A DNA stretch of 63,270 bases, counting the filler, from Choristocarpus tenellus KU-1152 (lineage: Eukaryota > Protista > Phaeophyceae): NCBI GenBank assembly GCA_964200185.2. It is 9 parts of 9 records of this genome, joined end to end, with 100 filler letters (N's around TTAATTAATTAA, not from the genome) between each part and the next. Parts side by side here need not be neighbours in the genome. Positions count along the whole stretch, not along the records: positions 18,281 to 29,658 come from CAXNAD020002358.1; 8 more parts are not named here. One strand, written 5' to 3'. The translations under genes were made by a program, and so were the position numbers. The number at the start of each line of letters is the position of its first letter. Position 1 is the stretch's first letter. Under the pieces are notes generated by a model. It was not told the DNA's origin and did not search any database. It saw nothing but the letters and a program-made list of their open reading frames with translations. This document shows, piece after piece, positions 15,340 to 29,877 of the stretch.

Positions 15340-18300
15340 TTAGTCCCGAACAACATGTCGTTCGGGACTGTTCTGTACACCTCATGTTCTCAGTCCTTAC
15401 TCCTACGACGAACACCTTGAGTAAACTGTGTACCTAGTAGGAGCGTAACGGTCCCAATATCACTCCGTTGTAGTACTCGAGCGCAAGCATCTCGACGAAG
15501 CACTGTGTGCCCGAGCCACCGTATCCTTATGTTTAGGGGGTTAGGGGTTAGGGATAGGGTTAGGGTAAACCTAAGTGAGTTTTTTTTCCATTTTATAGCG
15601 TATAGTGCCATATTCAGGGAGGAAAAAAAAAAAATCTCAGTCGGATGATTCTGAGTGTCGAATCAGCGGTTCCTGCCAACCTGATCTTGGGGGAATTGGA
15701 GGATCGGTACGATGTTACAAGGTATACCACCAATGAACAGATGTACCGATGACGGTATATCGATACTTGATAACCGGTATATCGGTTTCTTTCACAGTAG
15801 TTAAATTTCATGTCCCTAATAAAGTTCAGCTTAGTCTAGATCGTAACTTGATCGTGGTTTTTGTAACTGACCATCATCTCTATGCTTTGTATTCTATATA
15901 ACAATTTAGTTCTTCATACCGCTCTTGGCCTAAGCCTTAGGATACCAAGTGTAATATCGCTTGCCGTCCCCAAAACCTCTAGCAAATCAATGCCACTTAG
16001 AAAGGCATGTTTCTCGCTGGTTGGCCCTGCAATGAAAACACAATGTTTATGAGGTACCTTGAAGTGGATGAAACGGCTCGTGTAGTTACTTGACATTCCT
16101 GAACTTCTGGTATGGTAGGTCCTGCAGTGATAATGCAATTGACTGTCTGTAGTGTAAACTACTTGTGTGCTGGTTGTAGAAGGGTTAGGGTATACCTCTT
16201 GAATGATCTACTATCCCTGCTTGTGTGTGTCCAATCCAATGTGTGTGTGTGTGTCTGTGTTGTAGTGGATTTTGAGAGGATCGAACTGTTTTGTTTTGTT
16301 TTTTGTGAGATTTAGAATTAGAGGTAGGACTGAGGTTGGGGTGAAGTAGTCAACTCGAACTTTTAAAGTACTTAGCAAATAATAATAATAATGTAACACA
16401 TACATATCCTATTTGCACTGTAGATAGATTCACAGTACGTTTGTGTGGGTGCATGTATCCCAAGGAGGAAAGCGCCACATCAGTATTGGTGAAAGGTCCA
16501 CCAAAGTAGCTTTATTCCTGCCCCGAGTTTAGGTCAATGGCCTCTATAATCATACTACATTTTGCACCTCCTCTGCTCAGCATCAGGTCTAACGTTTTGT
16601 GGGATGCCAGGCTTACAAAGGCACAGAGATGGTATTACTGTACAATCGCCATTACCTTTTGTGGAGGTCTTCTGAGAACCCATTTACGAGGTACACCCTG
16701 AAATCTCAGGGTGTCCGATGTAGTGTACCTTTTTCTGCACCACCCTCTGAAAGAAACGCCTTCCTGATGTGGTATTAAAAAAAACTCCTCATAAAGTGTG
16801 ATGGAACTCTTGTGCTGAGCAGAGGAGGTGCGCTTGAATGTGTTGATAGATAAGAGGTATATATATACCTTTTTTTTGTTCAACCTCTGGTGATGCTTGG
16901 CGCCGTGAGGCAACTCCCCCCGCTTCTGAGAATTCATTACAGTTACATATTACAGTTACATACTACGAACATAAAATATATAATTGTCTTTGTTGTTGAT
17001 GTTGTTGTCATACCTCTCTGGCCCTTCTTTTAATGGACCCCTAACCCTAACAACTTTCACCCCTCTAACCGCTTTTGTAACTGTAATAATGCCAGTAACA
17101 GTGCATTAATAATAATAATAATAATATGTAATGGACTTTTGCTGTATGTCAGCCAATTGAGTTCTACGGAGAGACCAAGATCCGAAGGCGACAGCAGGTG
17201 GACACCCTCAACCACTGCATGCTAAGGGTGAGAGAGCCTGCTACGTTGCCCCTACTCTTACACCTGAAGTTCAGATTGATGCCAAGAAAGATGGGGGGGG
17301 GGGAGTTGGAGACCCCCCTTGTTGTACCTCCTAAGTGGATTTTTTTTTAACTTAATAGTTGGTAGTTCTCCCTGATTGGTGAAGGGTGAGTTGTGAAGAG
17401 TGCAGATTGGTCGGCATCTGTTGCGAAACTGTAGAACATTGATTTGTCATTCTCTAGGCGGGAAACGATTTTCTCTACAAACATTGAGAAATTCACTCTG
17501 CTGACACGTGATTGGTCGGAAGTGTTACCTTTGGGCTTTTTCCTGTACGTTTTTGTTTTGTTTTGGGTCCCCCCCTCCTACCTTTCGAGACACAGTCCGC
17601 TGCTTTTATTTTGTATTATTTATTGTTTATTATTTGTGATTATTTTTTTTTGTCAAGATTGCTGCAGGTATGATTCTTATTTTGTTGTTACTGATTGCTA
17701 TTACTATTCCAGTTATTATTATTATTATTATTTAGGCAGTTTTTCTTTCATTTGAGAAGGCATTCTGTTCCCTCTGGTGTGGTGATACATATATATATAT
17801 ATATGATGTCATGGACAGGGTAGAAGGTCATCAATGTGCTGAGGCAAGGACAAGTGTATAGGTGCCCTGTTCTTTTAGAGCTCTTTCCTTTTTCACACAT
17901 AAGTTTCTTGTAGGATTGTATTTTTGCCCACCTCTGCAGTTGGAGATCCAAGGTAGAATATACGCTCGTTCAGTCTTCTTTTTTTTACTGGAGGACTGCT
18001 GAAAAGCCGACCTGGATACTTAAGTAGGCGTTTTGCATTGCCGCCCATTTGAATCTTCTTATGTTTTGTGACTTTTTTCTATGTGTTACAAAAAAAAAAT
18101 CTAAAAGGAAAGTACTGAGCATGAATCGAATTGAATTGACTCATGGACTTTTGGATGCAAATGATGAGAATCATGGGGGGNNNNNNNNNNNNNNNNNNNN
18201 NNNNNNNNNNNNNNNNNNNNNNNNTTAATTAATTAANNNNNNNNNNNNNNNNNNNNNNNNNNNNNNNNNNNNNNNNNNNNGGGTGAAAAACGGACGCCGA

Positions 18301-19638
18301 CACCCCCACCCCCCCAGGTACTTTGACCCATTACAAGTACATGGAGTGGCAACATTTTTCACCAACAACTATCGCATGTCTTTCATTTGCCAAGGAGGCT
18401 TTGTAAGATAGGATCAAATTCAGTTGAAAACCATCCTGTCTTCTTGCTGGGGATACACATGACCATACTCTATGACTTAGGATCGTTACAACACACAGAA
18501 CATGTGCAGACCTGAACCTTCGAAGTGAGACGCACCAAGATGGAGCAGTAGGAGACATGGAACGAAAAGCAACATTATGTTTCTGAAGGTAGCTCATTCA
18601 CTCTCTCACTTACAATGCAGAGAATCTTGCTATTAGTCATACCAACCGATAGGTAGGAAGGGTTGCACTTTTTAAGACTCTCGAGGAAAGGCAAAAAAAA
18701 GATACAATTCTGTACAATTACCGAAGGAGCCTTTTTGCTTAATTGTGGTGTCACTTTGTGTGGAAAGGGGGAATATCAATTTGGCGTATACTCTTGTGCA
18801 ATGACACACATCACAACCCCCCCGCACCTAGTTCAACCATAATTTCAATCCGCCTAATCATGTAATCCACATCCTAAAATAATTATGTTCAATACAGAAG
18901 TCCAACTCGGAGGTGTGTTCTAAACAATCTGCATTTGCAAGTAGTTGTATGAACCTCATTGCCCATCATGAAAATATATCCTACCTCACCCCCTCACTCC
19001 ATACAGGTTGCTTCCATGACAAGGGAGGGCTAACCAACCTATTTGCTATGGTCAGACTCTCGTAAATTTCCAGAGGATCGAAGTGACCCTAGTAGGAGTA
19101 TTGTGTTCGCTTTCATGTTACCCTCGTAGAAATTCAATCACTCGCATTTGAGCGCTGCCCACCCATAGTTTCTAATTAAATCAAACAGCCCACATCTCAC
19201 ATTGAGCCAATAGTATGCTTTCAGCCTGCAACCTACTCTACCCTTACAACCCTAAATCCAAACGTTTTCAATCTTGGTAATACTAGATACTTGAGAGGGT
19301 GCCATCCCATGCAGCATGCATACAAGGCCCACCATACCTGAAGACCATATTCGAACCAACATGGTCTCTATCGGCATCATTTAACAAGGTGTTACATCAG
19401 TCATGATAACCACGACACATTGATGAGTACCAGCACTTCCGGTGCGGGCTTGGACTGCAACCAAATTTCTAGCCTGACCATAGGAATACCTACGTCTTAG
19501 TGGTCCCCCCAGGAATCCAACAAGTGGTACCCTATGGGGACGCCCGCATTGCCCCAAGTCAACACAGCAGACGATCTAAATGGGTGGACTGAAAAGGATG
19601 TATCAAACTGGAATGAATATGGTTCCCCCACATGGCGT

Positions 19639-22600
19639 TCAAAACGCCACTAAAGGTCTAGTGACTACAGTAGTCTGTCCATTACACTTATCTATGCTTG
19701 TTCCTTCCTCTGAAACAGAAAAATTAAGTTCCGCGATGAAGAGAGGTGTCACAAACAAGAAGGTTCTTGGGATACCCTGGTCGCACGGAGTGTGGACTGC
19801 CATACTCTATGACTGTACTACTGTACTATGCTACGTTTGTAGAGGAATCCCCTCCCCCAATAGCTCCAATGATATGGATGAGATGTGCTTATTATCGTGT
19901 GAGAATTGTTAGGGTGTTCTTTCTAGGTCCACCATCACCACTTTCACTTTCACTTCTTCTCTCATGTGGTTCAGGGTTAGGGGTGCAATACTCAGAGGTA
20001 TTAATATACAGGTTGAAGACTATATACAAATTAAGACAATCACAAAAATTCTTACTGTATTCTTACCTATGTAGAAGCCGTCGAGGAGGCTTGCCACGCG
20101 GAAATTTCCCCTGCCGTGGGCTTGTTCAAATGCCAATGTGGCATCACGTCCCCCCTTGTCTAGAAGGAGTTTGTATCCACCCGGATGCACAGTCAGGTAC
20201 TTAGTGATGTCGTAGACACCACCCCTAAACACTATCCAACAGGACTCAGACGTGTGATGAGAGGCAACCTATGGAAGCATATTGTTGTGGTGTCAAAAAG
20301 AAAAGTAGCATGAGGAGAGGTAGTTGTGGCCTTAATACTCTTTGTTATGTGTCAACATTGTTCCTTTGGAAACCTATATTATGGAAGTCGGTCAACCATT
20401 GACCTCAATCACATGATCTGGTAGGCGGGCAACCTCCTTTTCTAAAGACAAGACGAAAAGTAGAGGAGTTTAGGAGGTGTTTGACAAAAAGGCATGGAAT
20501 AAAAATAACCGCACTACTCTTGAAAATATACTACAAGCTCAACTTGAGGCAGGACAAATTGGACTCGGAGTGGTCAAATAGAAGGGAAGGTTCCTTTCAT
20601 TTCTGTCCCTGCACTCTTAAGCATGTACAGGCTTTGGAAATGGGAATGAAGGGGATGGATGGTGAGAGTTAAAATGGCATGAAGAAAACATGTGAGATAG
20701 AAATAGATGTTACAACAAAACATACACTATAGGTCACTAGCATTGCCAAAGAAAGAACATCAACCCTATGATAAACATCTGATGCACGGATATTCAGGAC
20801 TAGCTCGATATCTTGCATACTTCATGACAATATACAAAGAGCTTCTGATTATACCTCGGACCAACTGTACTCCATATCTGTCACAGGTGGATGGCCCGAG
20901 TTGAACAGATCTATGCACAGGCGATCCTGGGCGATGAGCCTGGCTGCATAACAGTCCCCAAGTTTCCTAAGGTTCTGTTGGAGGAAATACCAACTGATAT
21001 TGTATAGTGGTTGGGCACACAGCTGGTATGCCTCGCTGGTGATCTTGCGGGTCACTTCAGCCAAGATTGGCACACCACAAACATACCTACACGCAAAAAG
21101 AGGTTGGGTAGTGCAAGTGAGTTGGACCTCAAGCCAAAATCAGTCATGAACTTAGGAAAAAGAATTTCCAGCTAGTCCAAGTTAGGCGTGCCTTCGTGTT
21201 CCCAACTATGAGCAACCCAATCACTGAGGCACACATAAGTTGAGTGGGAGTTCTTACCCTCGGTGGGAGGATGTATCAGGCGAAAACGTTCCTGATATCT
21301 GCATCTCTGGCGCAAGAATGAGGTATGACAAGGCACTGGCAAAAAGGAATGTCTGGAAAAGGGGGTTTGATAGCAAAGGCACAAAATGCAGCTGCAAAGG
21401 AAGGAACAAATCAAAAACTCACAACACAACATTATATACATCTTCAAGGGTAATGTAAATATATGCCTTGCAGGTATCTACCCAATGAAGCAAGTCCTAG
21501 CAGTTCTGCTGAAATGGCAACGTGGGAGTTGAGATGTCGACTATGTACAAGGAAATGAATTAAAAAACAATTAGTGTGGTCACACAGTGGAACAGTTACA
21601 TGTTTTAGGTGGGTATTGAGATTTACTCAAATATTGGTACACATATGGTCTCTCTTTGTAATATCTATCCACTAGAAGCTCAACAAACACACCTGTGAAG
21701 CTGTATTACAATATAGCTTGAGGGTGTGCCAGACCCTCAAGACATTTTTGGCATGAGTCAAGCATGTACCCTCACACATTCTTAAAATGAGCAAAACCAT
21801 GATCATACAGGGAGAAGGATACTACATAGAAGAATTAATAACTGGAGCAAGAGATCCTTGAAGCAACTGCAGCCCTTTCACTACTTGCTCATTCTGTTGT
21901 GAACTCACATGTGCCCCCCCATTTCGAGCAAGTTCCACAGTCCGTGAAGGTTCTCCTGGCCTACCTTTGTGTTGCGATCAAATAGGTTGTTGATACGCTT
22001 GCGCTGCCCATCCACAAACCTTATTTTCCGCTCCCCAAGCCCAAATTCCTCCTCCCGACCACAATCCCCAGGCGTCCCCTCCAGGACCTTCATCTCTGTC
22101 TCAGACCCAGCACCCTCATCTACAACTAAGTCTACATCCTCTCTGGAGAAGGCTACCTTCAATGTCACAAGCCCACTCTTAACATGCGGCATCCATGCGT
22201 CTTGAAAATAGAGATTTTCCCGACTCTGGATTCCCCACACCAGCCACACCTGGAAAGTAAGCAACACACATGAGCAGTGGAGCAACACCCGAAAGTTGAC
22301 AAAAGGAGGTACAGTGGTATGAAAGCATGGGTTGTTTGGCCAGACGATCAGTACTTTCAGTCAACAGGAAGTGGGTGATAACACTTTGTGTATGCTCCTT
22401 ACAAGAACTACCCAAGCGATGTAGAAAGTAACACATCTTTGCCTTTGTGGGATTGCGAAGGTAGCACACCAACCCTAACCCTCTCATCACAAGAATTGTT
22501 GAAAAATGAAAGATAAGAATCCAAGATAATGACAATACATAGCTTGGCGTCATTGCTTCGCCTCACCTCTCTCCGTATGTTCAACCTCTCTGACTGTGCT

Positions 22601-25600
22601 GCAATCTCCTGCAGGAATCCCATGAATGGTGCTACCCCAGTCCCTAAGGACACCATCACAACTGGGACAGTTGGGTCTTCTGGCAGGCGGAAAGTTGGGG
22701 CTGGGGAGATAGCTGTTGGTAATCGCAGACCAGGAGCAGCACGGTCCAGCAAAAGATTTGATGCCGTCCCTGTCAGGTCCCCAATCCCCTTTGGTGCTCC
22801 CAAACATTTCCACGCCCGATGGGGAGGTCCTATCACTCCCTTCATAGCCTGGATCACTCTAGTCAGCTCTACCAGCCATCTTCTGGCCCTTGCAAACCTG
22901 CCCCCTCTTGAAGGCTTACGCATAAGAGCACAATACTTCTCAAGCACGGCCTTCTCAGAGTCATTCCAAGTCTCCTCGGGAGACAGCTCGTTGTCATTGA
23001 CTCTAAAACTGAAGTTGAGGTATATGGATGGGTCCACGTTCTGCATTGTACCCACGGACACAGCACGCTTGGCGGGTAGCACAGTAGAGTAATCCGTGGT
23101 TAGGTTGTCGGTCAACACCAACTGCGAACAGCATCTCTGTGGTTTTGGAAGTTTAAATTTTCGCATGCGAGATAGGGGTTTTTTAAATCCTTCATCTTTT
23201 TCGGCATGGAGAATGTTTTCTGCAGTCCCTTCAAGAAGATCACTGTCCAGATGAGATGCCGTTCGTGATACCAAGGAGACTCTACTACTTTTCACTTCCT
23301 CTACGTCCTGACTGCTGCTGCTGCTGATTGCATCAGGCTTGCTAATCCTTTCAGTATAGCTTGAGGAATCAAAGATCCATGCTGGTCCAGTGATCCCATA
23401 TCTCACCCGCCCCACCTGCTCAGACCAGGATCACCACCAAAACGTTGTCAAAAGAAAGGTCAAGCATTGGTTGAGGTGACTGTACTGCAGGGGGGCAGGT
23501 AGCATTCTTATATGAGTAGCACATCTAGTACACAAAACACACGAAGGCTGCTTAAGTCTAGCGTGCTTTGGGTCGTCAAAAACAGTTGCATGGGGACATC
23601 TGAAGGAGACTACTCTGCCTGCATTTGACGTAAGGCCTTATCAACAAAGGAATTTGCGTGATACCTCTGATTCATGGAAGCTGGTAATGGGAAGGCATCA
23701 TTGCACCTACCACAATGGAAAGCTCCTCAGGGGCAGTTGGTGGATTAGGTGCAGAGGCAATGGAGTACTCTCTTCGGCGCAATGGGGGCAGGGTGGATGC
23801 AAGCTGCTGCAGTAGTGCATGGCCTGGTGACACATGTGAGGTTGCAAGGACTAATGACACAAACGTGGCAAAATCCGTCTGGCGGAGCAGGGGAAGGGCA
23901 AACTTGCGTGTGACAAAAACAATACTCTGTAGTTGGACTGTTGCAGAGACCTTACAAACAATAAACTCCATGCACACCAGCAAGATGCACCTTCCAAGCT
24001 CCTGTGACAAGCACAATACACAATCCAATTCCAAGTTGACTACCAACTTGTTCCAACTAACTGCCAAAATAGAAACAAAACCAGGAACATGGATGTGATC
24101 TCCAATAAAAGCACCGCTGCTGGTATTATTGTGGTGATATTGCAGATTTGATTTCCTCAATTAGTTAAGCACAACTCATAGCACTTTGCACTATCAGGCA
24201 AGATCACATTGAAGTACCTGCTGAAGGCGGTGATAGTTCCGAGTGACAAATGTGCTTGTGCAGTACATGGCCTTCATTGTGGCCTCTGCAACATCTCGTG
24301 TCATGGGGTGTAGGGTTGCATGCTTCAGGAACTCATACAGTGGCAGGAATTCATTGCCACCACCGTTTTTGACAGAGACAACCTGCCTCTCCCTACACGC
24401 CTGTTCCCACTCATTAGTAAGGGGTATCAGGAGCGCTCCATCCTGGTCCATGCAGTAGAGTACAAATGAGTTTAGGTGGAGAGGAAGACAAGCATGGGGG
24501 CCATGGCTCAGGGAGGTTGATCCAGGATATAATAGCAGGATGGTAGGAGCCTTCAATGAGCACCAAAGAGTGCCTGAAATCCCAAATATGGGTACAACTA
24601 GTAGCACATACGATTTATGCTTGAAACTTAATGACTAGAAACTTCACAGCAAGTCTGAGGGAATTTGGGGGGAAGGAGTGGAGGTTAAGAGTCTACGGGA
24701 GAGAGATTAGTTGAAACAACTGCGACAAAAATATGACCTTCCACGCATTTTATCCCCCTCACCTCGCCAAGGGCATCCAGTGTCTCATCCACTAAGTCGT
24801 CACTGTTTGACGGCAACACAGATAGACGATCTCCAGGATGAAACAGGAGTCCAGTCCCCTTCATGTTGAATGTCAACATCTTGGCATCTGTTCCAGGCAA
24901 TGCTGCCACCCGTTTCACCTAAGGTGTGGGGTACAGATAAGACACCATACGGTATATACAGACTTCTTACACTTCGAAATACTCTGGAATGTATAATATT
25001 GATTTATTGATAGAAGGGATAATGTTTTACTTCACACCTCTGTTGCTTGCTCATCAGGTTCCTGGTTCTTGTACTCAAAAGCTGTTTTGACACCCTGCAA
25101 GAAAGTCTGGAAACTTTGTACCTTTTCAACACTTACCAATAGGAAACGAAACCAGTACAAATTTTCCTTTAGACACATTCTTTCACAATGCAGCCCGCCA
25201 ACCAGCTTGGAGTAAGGTCAGAACTTAGGCACTTGCTTCAAAGAACTGGGTCTTGAGTAAGTGTAACTTACCCATCACCCACCTTCCTTCAGGCCTTGAG
25301 GTAGTATTATATGGATGAAAGCAAAGAAATGAGGACTACTCCTCCTCCTATCTATCACACACCTGCACACTTGTGAATGTGCGGGACCCAACCACCATCC
25401 GCTGACGCTCAGCCATCGCATCAAGCATGAACCGGTTAACCATGAGCCACGGCCGGGACTGCCATCCAACATCGAGCTTTGTACCAGCAGCTGTCTTTGA
25501 CCGTCCAGTTTTGGTTGCAACTTCGATAAATCCAATTATCTTCAGACGATGAACCTTGGGTTCGTTGGGAGAAGAACATAAAGTGACCGGAAGGGAGAGT

Positions 25601-28600
25601 GCAGGTGTTGGGTGAGTCGGAATGCAAATCACTTGGATACAATATTGCACGGAGATTGCTCGAAGGGATTGAAAGTAGACATCCATACTGACCCATGGAC
25701 TTTAACAAGACAACATATGGTACGGTTGTCTGAGTGCGATTTCGGTGTAGCAATTCCGCGTTGTGTACTATTCAGCATCCCTCAAACTTGCTTCACCTCA
25801 AGGAATCCAAATGTGCCCTCCTTGCCCACGAACAGGCCATGCACCTCCCTGAACATGTTATGGAACTCGTGGCCGTCTGTGACCTTAATGTATGACAGTA
25901 GGGAGACAGCTCGCACCGCCTCAAAGAAGTCCCGATGGAGCCTGCCGAGCAGATTAAATACACATACATATATATATAATGCTCAGTAAAGTGCAAATTA
26001 GGAGTTAAGTAAGGCAGTCCTCTTTTGTGTGTATTGATCAATATTTGGCTCTAGTTCATGGGATGGACGTCACCAATGAGGTGGTATGTTCGGACTGGCC
26101 GATGATTGATTGGTATTGCAATTCAACAAAGGTCTTCTGCAGGATCGGAGTATTGACAAGACATTAATTGTACCATTCATCCCCATCTATATCAGCACAG
26201 TTTGTTGCAAGGGGTGTAAATCCTCATGGTATTATCTGCACATGGCAAGGAATGATTTGGCAAAGAACAATTTAAGCAAACATGAACAACAGTACGCCCT
26301 AGGCCACTCTTCTCACCAACAAACATGTGAATTTCATCCTCGAGCAAAGGGGGCCGTGTGAGGGTCCCATCTCCTTCTCTTCTCAACTCTATCTTAATAT
26401 GTCGTCACTACATACACAATTAGTAGTCTACAAAATAATTCTGCGCACGTACTACTCACTCCGAAGAATAATAATAATAATTTCTCCGGTAGTTCTATGT
26501 ACACACATTACATGTTGAAACAAGGTTGTCACATCCCAAGCCAAACCTGTAAGAAATATGCACTTACTGATCCCAGTTCATGTAAAAACTTAGGAAAACG
26601 AAAGTTTGTTGCACTTTTCCACAGCTGGAAGATCTTGCCATTACCCGAGGAGTGTTAACGCCTAGTTGCTTAGGTAAATGTGAACCACTACCCCACATTT
26701 TAGTGTAGAGGGCACATGGACGAGACAAGTAACGAGTTTAACGTCTTCTTTTTTTCAACCTAAGGAGAGCACACAAGTACTATCTTTACTCCAATGAGTC
26801 ATCGCATACAAAACCCCAAACCGTATCAACATTAAACATCATTTCGACCACAGTGTCCAATTACACAGGTATGCAATGTCCAACTTGATTTTGACGAGAT
26901 CCCTTCTCCATTTCAAGATTATGCTCTCTTGTTGTAATACTCTCCATAGACCCGTCACCGATGTCAGTATTCATGAATCTATTTCACACCCGAACCCTAA
27001 CACTAGTTGTAAGTAGCGTATGACAGTTGGGAGTGGATTTATGGTTGGTTTGTGACTCGAGCAACAGCACCGAAAGGTTTGAAACCTAGTACATCACACA
27101 CCAATCTATGGATAATTGCAATGGGTCCACAACATGCAGACTCAAACACTTGACATAATTGTGGGTACTACTCTAGACGAAACAAGGCTGTGTTGAACAA
27201 TTTTTACCCAACACATAACAAGGACTCTTTTGGCACCCATGGAATGTATCATCAAGAAACACTAACACACTCCATACAATGCTGCAATGAGCATTGAGAG
27301 ACAAGGCACAACAATCTCCACTTACAAAAATGGTCAATTTTATCACCACAGAACTCTTGATGTAACATATACAGATTAAATGCCGATTAGAATAAGCCAT
27401 TTGGGGTCATCATACATACTTGGGCAGCCACTTGAGGTCGGTAGAGGCCAGGACTCCCATGTCCGACTTGTAGTCATTGCCAGGGTCACGCCCCAGGAAG
27501 GCATCCAAGAGGTGGATACTCGGAAAAAGTAGGCCTGAAATTGTCTTTTCCTTAGCCACCACAGGAGATCCACATCGTCCAATCACTAGTTTGTGTGTAA
27601 CGAAAAATCCAGGTTATGAAATTGGGAGGATACAAATAGCATCACTGCTCAAATCCAAACGACTGCAATGAAAGGAATGCTATTAGCAACTGCAACAGAT
27701 GGTACTGTTCCCGGGCAATGTGTAACACATAGAATCTACAAAAAGTAATATTTTTGATGTTGGGAAGATGGATGTATGCCGTGGAAGAGCTTCATCAAAC
27801 CTGCCCAAACACAAAAAAATTACAAATTGTCGAGTAAATATATTTTCTAATACTAATTGTCGCTTTAGATCGGGGAACATCCCGGCCGTCGTCATAGACA
27901 CTTTACACTTTACACTGCACTATTTCTCATGTCATCCACAAGCTACTGAAAGTTTCAACTGATCGAGGGGTGCTTGAGGCCACATAAACGCCTACACCAG
28001 TAGTGATAACTTGAGACAGGCGTTGCACAACGGTATGTAAGGAGGGAGAATGCGCTTGCCTGGAAGAAGGGACTTCCAACAGACTGTACGTCAAAAATCA
28101 ACTCACCTTGACCCCATGTGACTTGGTCAACGTAATTGGAAGACATTGGAGACGGGGAGCTTCCAAGGAAAGCCTTCGTCATCCTCTCCACAATAGTGAG
28201 CAAGTTGAGTAGCTCTACACGGAGGGCGTCCGGGTTGTTGGAGAGGATTGCCTGCTGGGCACGAGCTACAACGCCCGGTAGTCGAGCGGCGCTTCTTTCA
28301 ATCATGTGGCAAGAGATAATGAAATTGTACTCACCCTGCAAACGGAGGACGGGAAAGGTACCCATGTTAAAGACAACTGATTCCTTGGGTGGATATTTTC
28401 TACATCGGGAGAAATATCCACAGAGCCGAACCACCTGTGGGTTGTTCCTGTTCCAGGGAATGACTCCATATATATAGGAAAAATCAGTAATCACAGTACT
28501 GGCGTAGTAACATCAAAGACGAGAGAACTTCAAACATTTACAATCAACAATACGACAAATACGCTTACCATACCACCGCAGGCCATCACAGCTGGTTTGA

Positions 28601-29129
28601 GCTGCGCCCAGCTATTGGTGATCTCCACCTGCCCTCCTTGCTCAGGACCTTCACAGCATCGCTCGGGTACATAATCGAAATTATAGACGAACCAGTCCAA
28701 AGAATTGAAGCTAGTGGTTGGTCTGTCCATCCGTTCACCAAGACGAGTCCACGGACGAAGCACGCACTGAGGGATGTCAGTGTCGCCTAGGGACATGTTC
28801 TTCAACGCGTGAGCCATCGCCCCCAGCAATGCGTTGGCTCGCAATACATGCTTATCTGGTAGGTCCTCAGCTTCGGCGCTTAGCTCTGGCATGGACATGA
28901 TGCTGGTGTAGTCCCTAGATAGACACATGGATGGCAAAGAAGCGCCTATGGTTTCCCAGAGTTGGTGAGAGTCTGGGAGTACGGAAAGAGGACAACGGGG
29001 CAAGAAACCTCCGTCCATGCTGAGGAAGGCCATCGTCTGTTCCTCATAACCTTGTTCCTGCAGTCTCTGAAGCATGAGCAGGCTAGGGGCTGTTGTCCTA
29101 GTCCTCGCGCCATAGGTACGAGGAGGCAT
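19639..29129 (-). CDS. About 1,200-aa fusion protein: IDO/PrnB-like heme dioxygenase + FNR-type FAD/NADPH reductase + cytochrome b5. Exons 28569-29129, 28107-28335, 27420-27585, 25797-25941, 25363-25554, 24763-24918, 24218-24442, 23711-23950, 22567-23415, 21909-22249, 20855-21086, 20067-20268; tentative last exon 19639-19709
   Basis: All junctions are GT-AG and phase-compatible with no stops. IDO-like motifs: [72 protein letters not shown] (putative proximal His). Reductase motifs: [74 protein letters not shown]. b5 motifs: [22 protein letters not shown]...[13 protein letters not shown]. Confidence 0.88.
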
Positions 29130-29429
29130 ATCGAAATTCGAGCACCCCTATTAACTTCGGGTTTGTAGAATGGTGTTGACTCCCAAAAGCATCCAAGTTA
29201 GTTTGTTGAAGTAACTTGCTCTCTTTCAAACACCAACCCTAAAATGCATTACTTTGTATAGATATTTGCCAATTGTAATTATCCATTTTCACATCACTCA
29301 GATATGTGACGAAGGAATTATAGTGACATTAACAGTAATTTTCAAATACAGTACCTACCCCGATTTTGTTCACTCAAGCCCGAAAAAAGCGGTACAGAAT
29401 TGATGTGGTACAATATCGTTTTTGTAGTA

Positions 29430-29584
29430 ATTAATCGTGGTTAGCTGGGAAATCAATCGTCGAAGCGACTGATTAATCGTGATGAGATGGGAAATCAATC
29501 GTCGAAGCGACCAATTAATCGGGGCGAGCTGAAAAATCAATTGTGAAATCGAGTGATTAATCGTAGTGAGCTGGGAAATCAATC
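29430..29584. repeat. 42-bp tandem repeat, about 3.7 copies (ATTAATCGTGnTnAGCTGGGAAATCAATCGTCGAAGCGACTG-like)
   Basis: ATTAATCG starts at 29430, 29472, 29514 and 29556, an exact 42-nt period. Confidence 0.9.
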
Positions 29585-29877
29585 ATAAGCTTCATGGATA
29601 GGATAGAAACGATTACGAGCACTTTTTCTTAATGATGTTTATGTGTTAATGCGCATCTNNNNNNNNNNNNNNNNNNNNNNNNNNNNNNNNNNNNNNNNNN
29701 NNTTAATTAATTAANNNNNNNNNNNNNNNNNNNNNNNNNNNNNNNNNNNNNNNNNNNNCCCCCCCCCCCAGATACTTTGGGTCTTATTACTCCCCATCTA
29801 CAATTTTATCATCCACAGAAAAAGTCTCCATGTCTACCTTCGGCGTGTTTCAAGGTCACCAGACAACAGCATCTTCC

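Follow-up and report, generated by a model that had tools for sequence, protein, structure and literature searches.

An IDO-fold heme domain fused to an NADPH-flavin reductase and cytochrome b5 in the brown alga Choristocarpus tenellus: a candidate self-sufficient heme oxygenase

Gene Structure and Expression

The window analysed here (63,270 nucleotides, filler included) contains at positions 18281-29658 the whole contig CAXNAD020002358.1 (11,378 bp) of the brown alga Choristocarpus tenellus (assembly GCA_964200185.2), and on its minus strand lies a gene in which an IDO-like heme domain is joined, in a single reading frame, to an FAD- and NADPH-binding reductase and a cytochrome b5. The gene model comprises 12 exons between 29129 and 20067, all with GT-AG introns, compatible phases and zero stops, amounting to 1155 codons plus one nucleotide. 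The public model P0156 (1170 amino acids) matches these exons one for one and then reads into intron 12. The GC content is 52% in exons and 42% in introns, and the mean intron length is 509 bp. Exons were searched singly, and whole-protein analyses were run on P0156.

The IDO-like domain is encoded by the first five exons (all coordinates are on the minus strand). Exon 1 (28569..29129, amino acids 1-187) carries the start codon and the first part of the domain, with no obvious signal peptide on inspection by eye; exon 2 (28107..28335) supplies F192, C196, W261 and G266, exon 3 (27420..27585) the distal loop T-I-S-G-L-L, exon 4 (25797..25941) a further part of the domain, and exon 5 (25363..25554) the proximal His369 (codon 25551-25549), the GRxxT loop (R385, T388) and the invariant R417, after which the IDO-like domain ends. 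The FAD-binding domain begins in exon 6 (24763..24918; Pfam FAD_binding_1, E-value 1e-5) and is followed by the connecting subdomain of a P450 reductase (CPR)-type protein in exon 7 (24218..24442) and by the RxYS FAD motif with the catalytic Ser597 (codon 23764-23762) in exon 8 (23711..23878). Exon 9 (22567..23415) contains an insertion of about 200 amino acids (about residues 625-820), poorly conserved yet expressed, and after it the FAD helix with G830 and the NADPH motif GTGVAPF. The NADPH-binding domain with its AFSR motif (S932, R933) occupies exon 10 (21909..22249), the catalytic Cys1014 and Asp1070, the flavin-shielding Phe1072 and a linker exon 11 (20855..21086), and cytochrome b5 exon 12 (20067..20268; Pfam Cyt-b5, E-value 1.1e-16), with His1116 (20187-20185) and His1139 (20118-20116). 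Intron 12 (18281..20066) is interrupted by the contig end.

The three sequencing runs of the study (X1, X2 and X3) all contain the gene's DNA. Run X3, which is not on record as RNA, was taken as RNA from its behaviour, the depth being mostly 200-800 on exons (about 370-600 throughout exon 9) and below 70 on introns. The comparison with X3 covered a 6-kb stretch, with introns 1 and 2 outside it, and the evidence consists of contigs rather than single molecules spanning the gene. Spliced joints were recovered for seven introns (4, 5, 6, 7, 8, 9 and 11), among them intron 5, which links the IDO part to the FAD part; the joints 25552/25795 and 24915/25360 flank exon 5, and loose ends agree with the joins of exons 3/4 (at 25941, where the loose end fits the end of exon 3) and 10/11, so that 9 of the 11 introns are supported overall. 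The two junctions singled out for an RNA check in the preliminary description of this locus (25363/24918 and 20855/20268) are thus both spliced in X3. Separate IDO and reductase genes are ruled out by the in-frame spliced joint 24915/25360 together with relatives that have the fusion in a single open reading frame (ORF).

The same preliminary description had placed the single frame, of about 1,200 amino acids, between 29129 and 19639, its end probably being the candidate exon 19709-19639. Its 12 exons are confirmed. The X3 contig that leaves exon 12 at 20066 stays in frame and continues Y-I-G-Q-L-K-Q-P, in agreement with the family pattern IGxL after b5, and this continuation was not found in 18281-20066, where even the best match has 13 mismatches in 30; the end at 19639 is therefore unsupported and the gene is truncated by the contig end. 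In 16 of 17 members of the same clade, 175-243 residues follow b5, and both an exon 13 at 19709-19639 and the read-through of P0156 into intron 12 were rejected on the RNA loose end and on this post-b5 length. A conserved C-terminal domain of about 200 amino acids, present in nearly all relatives, is missing from the model; the full protein would probably measure about 1,350-1,370 amino acids, with exon 13 and the helical C-terminal domain encoded past the contig end. The exon-12 RNA contig could derive from the paralog described below; even in that case, a counterpart with about 90% identity should have been detected in the rest of the contig.

A second, diverged copy is present in the same assembly. 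In the DNA runs X1 and X2, contigs match the exons at 90-95% identity, differ in their introns and extend to the b5 exon, and CAXNAD020016849.1 (L001, 1668-3744) carries exons 1-3 of this paralog intact, with a reading frame open from the same ATG as in exon 1. The two algal copies have evolved under purifying selection (dN/dS, the ratio of nonsynonymous to synonymous rates, of 0.08 over exons 1-3), and a pseudogene is ruled out by the lack of stops, the expression and this ratio. In its public model the paralog starts from a Met inside the frame, even though the ATG further upstream is conserved. A minor spliced variant in X3 at 20945-20954 (~12% of depth) is probably the paralog transcript.

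Some further features of the contig were recorded. At 25442 and 25450 all three runs disagree with the assembly at full depth, changing M405 to T on the coding strand and leaving P402 silent, possibly because of an assembly error or a collapsed paralog. A tandem repeat at 29430-29584 (42-bp unit, 3.7 copies, 78% matches) lies 300-450 bp upstream of the start codon. No match to Rfam was obtained.

Domain Architecture

Pfam assigns to P0156, above cut-offs and in the order expected from the preliminary description, the domains IDO (37-243), FAD_binding_1, NAD_binding_1 and Cyt-b5. The N-terminal domain had been described as IDO/PrnB-like; Pfam places it in IDO and not in PrnB (PF08933), and a profile of the family matches IDO2 and IDO1 with E-values of 1e-42 to 1e-40. 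The AlphaFold model of amino acids 26-428 (predicted local distance difference test, pLDDT, 93.7) matches IDO1 in Foldseek with a template-modelling (TM) score of 0.72-0.78 and an E-value of 5e-12, and in a wide structure library the Z-scores fall from IDO2 (39.1) and IDO1 (37.6) to PrnB (27.2), SO4414 (25.3), TDO (14.8) and MarE (12.0). As modelled, the N-terminal domain is of the IDO fold and probably a heme protein, nearer to IDO than to PrnB, and it is not filed here as a canonical IDO. No globin domain was found, the heme domain being of the IDO fold.

The best PDB sequence matches of the reductase are CYP102, CysJ and CPR. Across the 85 long members of the family RxYS597, GTGVAPF and AFSR are conserved, as are the individual catalytic positions (S597 and C1014 in 80/85 each, D/E1070 in 75/85, an aromatic F/Y at 1072 in 77/85). 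S932 and R933 of AFSR correspond to the 2'-phosphate site of CPR-type reductases. A flavodoxin (FMN) domain gave no Pfam match in P0156 or in its relatives, and a model of CysJ could be aligned to the relative P0034 from position 249 on only. Judged by its motifs, the reductase corresponds to the half of a P450-reductase-type protein that binds FAD and NADPH, and it has no FMN domain.

Both axial histidines of the cytochrome b5, as first proposed, are present: His1116 is kept in 82 of the 85 long members, His1116 and His1139 are invariant in the clade of the algal protein, and the HPGG motif of b5 is found. The b5 model of a homologue resembles known b5 with a Z-score of 13.8. In a complete relative, the b5 and the C-terminal domain were modelled together (pLDDT 94), and the C-terminal part forms a helical bundle, for which searches of Pfam, the Atlas and folds gave no clear match (best non-b5 Z-score 7.6).

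The Heme Pocket

The pocket was mapped onto that of IDO1 by profile alignment, with residue counts over 107 aligned sequences. The proximal heme ligand His369 is present in 107/107 and aligns with the proximal His of IDO2, F192 corresponds to F163 of IDO1 and W261 to F226. The position of R231 in IDO1 is G266 here, and across the family it is Arg in 1/107 and elsewhere mostly Ala or Gly; the position of S167 is C196, with Cys or Gln in the family, and that of C129 is Trp or Leu. The distal loop G-G-S-A-G-Q of IDO1 has become T-I-S-G-L-L in the algal protein and G-P-S-G-T in bacteria, so that only the Ser (S280, S263 in IDO1) is kept, with A264 changed to G and G265 to L; the G265 position is mostly T, A or L in the family. 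T388, in 97/107 and within GRxxTxGG, was matched to the JK-loop T379 of IDO1 by motif resemblance, past the end of the profile alignment. At the position of S228 in IDO1, next after F227, K or R occurs in about 96/107.

TDO and IDO1 bind the carboxylate of the substrate through an equivalent Arg. The same role is played by R118 in MarE (PMC11904535). With R231 lost and the distal loop remodelled, a classical Trp dioxygenase therefore appears the less likely reading, and the title of dioxygenase given to the protein at first is unsupported. The other suggestion made at that time, that the fused chain could supply electrons for monooxygenase-type or rearrangement chemistry, would fit the changes in the pocket better.

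Family Distribution and Phylogeny

The algal fusion is one member of a widespread family and not a one-off. Exon 1 alone retrieves at least 277 cluster representatives, and among the fetched proteins about 83 have the full order IDO-FAD-NAD-b5-C-terminal domain and 16 the short order IDO-b5-C-terminal domain. A genome scan gave 67 bacterial loci (among those scored, 47 long and 8 short) in Chloroflexota, Myxococcota, Actinomycetota, Bacteroidota, Poribacteria, Acidobacteriota and others, including intronless members in Chitinophaga solisilvae, Oligoflexus tunisiensis and, as short forms, Geodermatophilus. Among eukaryotes, the members with a named source come from Endostelium (an amoeba), Eucheuma (a red alga) and Paramyrothecium (a fungus). 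In an unrooted tree the branch with the algal protein has about 15-19 rows, Endostelium and Eucheuma among them, and stands apart from the named bacteria. The fusion is already visible in automatic annotation. Members carry the database labels 'sulfite reductase flavoprotein' or 'cytochrome b', and the ESM Atlas contains small automatic clusters with the same domain pairs.

The short, reductase-less forms stand in separate branches and retain b5 and the C-terminal domain. Since these two are kept where the reductase is lost, the b5 is likely to be the direct partner of the catalytic heme.

The Paramyrothecium foliicola protein P0189 (L077, 10001-20571; 2390 amino acids) joins an enoyl-CoA hydratase and a fungal transcription factor to the IDO-reductase-b5 fusion and is probably three genes merged by annotation. 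Members broken into two or three ORFs (L003, 8001-12628; L011, 7512-11391; L075, 8001-11398) are probably due to sequencing frameshifts in long-read assemblies.

Bacterial Gene Neighborhoods

Among the ORFs of about 65 bacterial loci, a crude motif test found no kynB, kynU or TDO motifs, and no halogenase or prn-like genes occurred among the recurring neighbors. In Chitinophaga solisilvae (L025, 7914-17116) the fusion gene lies 38 bp before trpEGDCBA. The trp genes there follow in the order trpE, trpG, trpD, trpC, trpB and trpA, with no trpF between trpC and trpB.

Seven Chloroflexota loci carry bacillithiol-type genes, with bshA in six, bshB1 in four, and an Mca-like amidase and a gene for a protein of 390-405 amino acids in all seven; the BshA and BshB1 assignments are above NCBIfam cut-offs. 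The operon (L008, 5250-10826; also L006, L009, L010, L011, L032 and L035) comprises the fusion gene, the 390-405-amino-acid protein, bshB1, the Mca-like amidase (1015 amino acids, with NPCBM-associated and cNMP domains) and bshA, and it is possibly a variant bacillithiol pathway. The 390-405-amino-acid protein is a tentative BshC candidate, its motifs GQQ and FxWxDTD resembling those of BshC, but a PDB profile search gave no BshC. In Oligoflexus, gstA is directly downstream of the fusion gene, and Myxococcota and Oligoflexus members bear an N-terminal gamma-glutamyl-cyclotransferase-like (AIG2-like) region of about 280 amino acids (L012, L015, L017, L019, L020, L021, L026 and L047).

Directly upstream of the fusion gene, CBS-pair genes occur in 12 loci and PAS hybrid kinases in 12 loci; the hybrid histidine kinase, often abutting the start codon, was recorded at L030, L031, L036, L038, L039, L043, L046, L049, L051, L052 and L055. 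Their PAS domains are without the NCRFLQ motif, and identification of these kinases as LOV proteins was rejected. Members from Anaerolineae have an FHA domain. The trp, thiol and signalling links each represent one or two events on the tree; no single pathway emerges, and they are leads only.

Comparison with Known Systems

With IDO1 and IDO2 (PF01231) the algal protein shares the two-domain fold (root-mean-square deviation 2.2-2.5 A), the proximal His, S263 and perhaps the JK-loop Thr, and IDO1 can take up electrons in trans from b5 and P450 reductase. Unlike IDO1 and IDO2, to which it is 15-20% identical and from which it departs at the pocket positions given above, the algal family has reductase, b5 and C-terminal helical domain in one chain, and the kynurenine-pathway context was not found around it by the motif test mentioned. 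The HDAO superfamily (MarE, PrnB, SfmD, TyrH) has a His-ligated heme on the same helical core, and MarE provides a precedent for the reductant-dependent monooxygenation of an indole; MarE, however, retains the carboxylate Arg, and HDAOs sit in natural-product clusters, whereas the fusion family is mostly outside such clusters. None of these four enzymes is known to carry its own reductase.

P450 BM3 (CYP102), nitric-oxide synthase and CysJ share with the fusion a CPR-type module for FAD and NADPH, marked by RxYS, GTGxAPF, AFSR, Cys and Asp. They differ from the fusion in the FMN domain, for which b5, placed C-terminal to the NADPH domain, stands in, and in BM3 and nitric-oxide synthase the catalytic heme is Cys-ligated, while that of the fusion is predicted to be His-ligated on an IDO fold. 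In flavohemoglobin and in fusions of b5 with b5 reductase (such as NCB5OR), too, an FNR-family domain in the same chain keeps a heme domain or b5 in the reduced state; the algal protein is distinguished from these by an IDO fold in place of a globin, by a reductase that is of the CPR type, with a connecting domain, and not of the b5-reductase type, and by two different hemes.

Proposed Function and Alternative Explanations

The gene, its splicing, the fold, the conserved ligands and catalytic residues and the architecture of the family are shown here, and from them we infer the binding of the cofactors, the direction of electron flow, the type of reaction, the substrate and the role of the C-terminal domain, as follows. 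NADPH would donate a hydride to FAD, which would hand single electrons to the fused cytochrome b5, acting as stand-in for the FMN domain of P450 reductase, and the b5 heme would reduce the His369-ligated catalytic heme. This in-cis chain is very probable, because the catalytic residues are intact, the FMN domain is missing, and IDO1 is supported in vitro by P450 reductase with or without b5 (PMC13142367). The catalytic heme would then bind O2 and transfer a single oxygen atom to a small substrate, aromatic and possibly indolic, that is held otherwise than L-Trp is in IDO1, in a MarE-like monooxygenation or related oxidation that would consume electrons at every turnover. The probable role of the C-terminal helical domain is to dock b5 onto the heme domain or to build the oligomer.

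Our tentative preference is thus for a heme oxygenase of the IDO fold that is self-sufficient, consumes electrons and acts on a non-canonically bound aromatic or indolic substrate. It is favored by MarE, a monooxygenase of the same superfamily that has been assayed with ascorbate (PMC11904535), by the lack of kynB, kynU and TDO motifs in the neighborhoods tested, by the position of the gene just before the trp genes in Chitinophaga solisilvae, and by the route to NAD in brown algae, which starts from aspartate (PMC4217691) and therefore removes the usual reason for an IDO. Several points weigh against this proposal. The loss of R231 could be offset by the K/R at the S228 position, by R385 or by K382; the JK-loop Thr seems to be kept, which would allow Trp binding; and the mapping of the pocket onto IDO1 rests on profile alignments, not on model coordinates. 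Reductase-less members must draw on outside electrons. The trp link is confined to one locus of 62, and in other lineages the gene is linked to thiol metabolism or to signalling.

Some of these observations would suit a Trp or indoleamine 2,3-dioxygenase in which the reductase and b5 fused to it serve only to re-reduce the heme after autoxidation. IDO1 and IDO2 are the nearest folds, far above PrnB, S263 and, it seems, a JK-like Thr are kept, one member stands at the head of a trp operon, and b5 has been proposed as the physiological reductant of IDO (PMC4191572). We nevertheless consider this explanation rather unlikely, given that 106/107 sequences lack R231 and that the G265 and S167 positions are altered, given also the aspartate route and the lack of kynurenine-pathway neighbors in the motif test already described, and the large cost that a full reductase would represent for occasional priming. 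It is likewise unlikely that the protein is a flavohemoglobin-like redox or gas handler, in which an oxy-ferrous IDO-fold heme, reset by NADPH, would remove nitric oxide (NO) or oxidise sulfide or thiol adducts in connection with low-molecular-weight thiols and stress signalling. Three thiol links (BshA/BshB1 with the Mca-like amidase, GstA, and the gamma-glutamyl-cyclotransferase-like fusions) and the upstream CBS genes and PAS hybrid kinases would agree with it, as would the activation of IDO1 by polysulfides and the IDO-like myoglobins, in which an IDO fold has become an O2 binder without Trp activity. However, the GstA and cyclotransferase-like links fall in the same clade and each link counts one or two tree events, the PAS domains are not of the LOV type, the large number of conserved residues in the pocket speaks for an organic substrate, and one IDO-like myoglobin reportedly performs poorly as an NO dioxygenase (PMC3820574).

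It is quite improbable that the built-in reductase powers a ring rearrangement like that of PrnB, or some other non-oxygenative reaction in which an amine ligates the heme. PrnB shares the fold and binds its substrate by the amine on iron, and its activity was not reconstituted with added redox partners (PMC11791213); however, the algal protein is much nearer IDO, halogenase or prn-like genes do not recur beside its relatives, and b5 with P450 reductase failed to activate PrnB in vitro (PMC11791213). The remaining explanation concerns the origin of the gene, which might be real but come from a eukaryote living in the algal culture. The assembly is fragmented, the contig carries this gene alone, and none of the relatives with a named source listed in the clustered searches is from another brown alga. 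Brown-algal genes are intron-rich, and the eleven introns found here fit such a gene; the second copy lies in the same assembly, and the gene is in all three runs, in one as abundant spliced RNA, which makes a contaminant very improbable.

Significance

The architecture was at first thought to have no characterised counterpart, and the full-text literature, with subscription papers largely outside the search, gave no description or assay of an IDO-reductase-b5 fusion. Each of its domains is already known; joined in this way, they apparently make up a branch of the IDO/HDAO superfamily that is widespread, self-sufficient and uncharacterised. Work on IDO-fold enzymes mostly relies on artificial reductants, and the physiological reductant of IDO1 is still debated; a single natural chain with NADPH, FAD, b5 and IDO-fold heme makes the transfer of electrons from b5 to heme directly testable, most easily in the intronless bacterial members, and it could offer a new scaffold for a self-sufficient biocatalyst of the BM3 kind. 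The altered pocket suggests chemistry undescribed for the IDO fold. The algal protein may well be the founding example of a so far unstudied group of self-sufficient enzymes with this fold, spread over no fewer than six bacterial phyla as well as red and brown algae, amoebae and fungi, in which b5 would replace FMN and the reaction would be new to the fold, for example the monooxygenation of an aromatic compound other than Trp or the oxidation of thiols, sulfide or NO tied to signalling.

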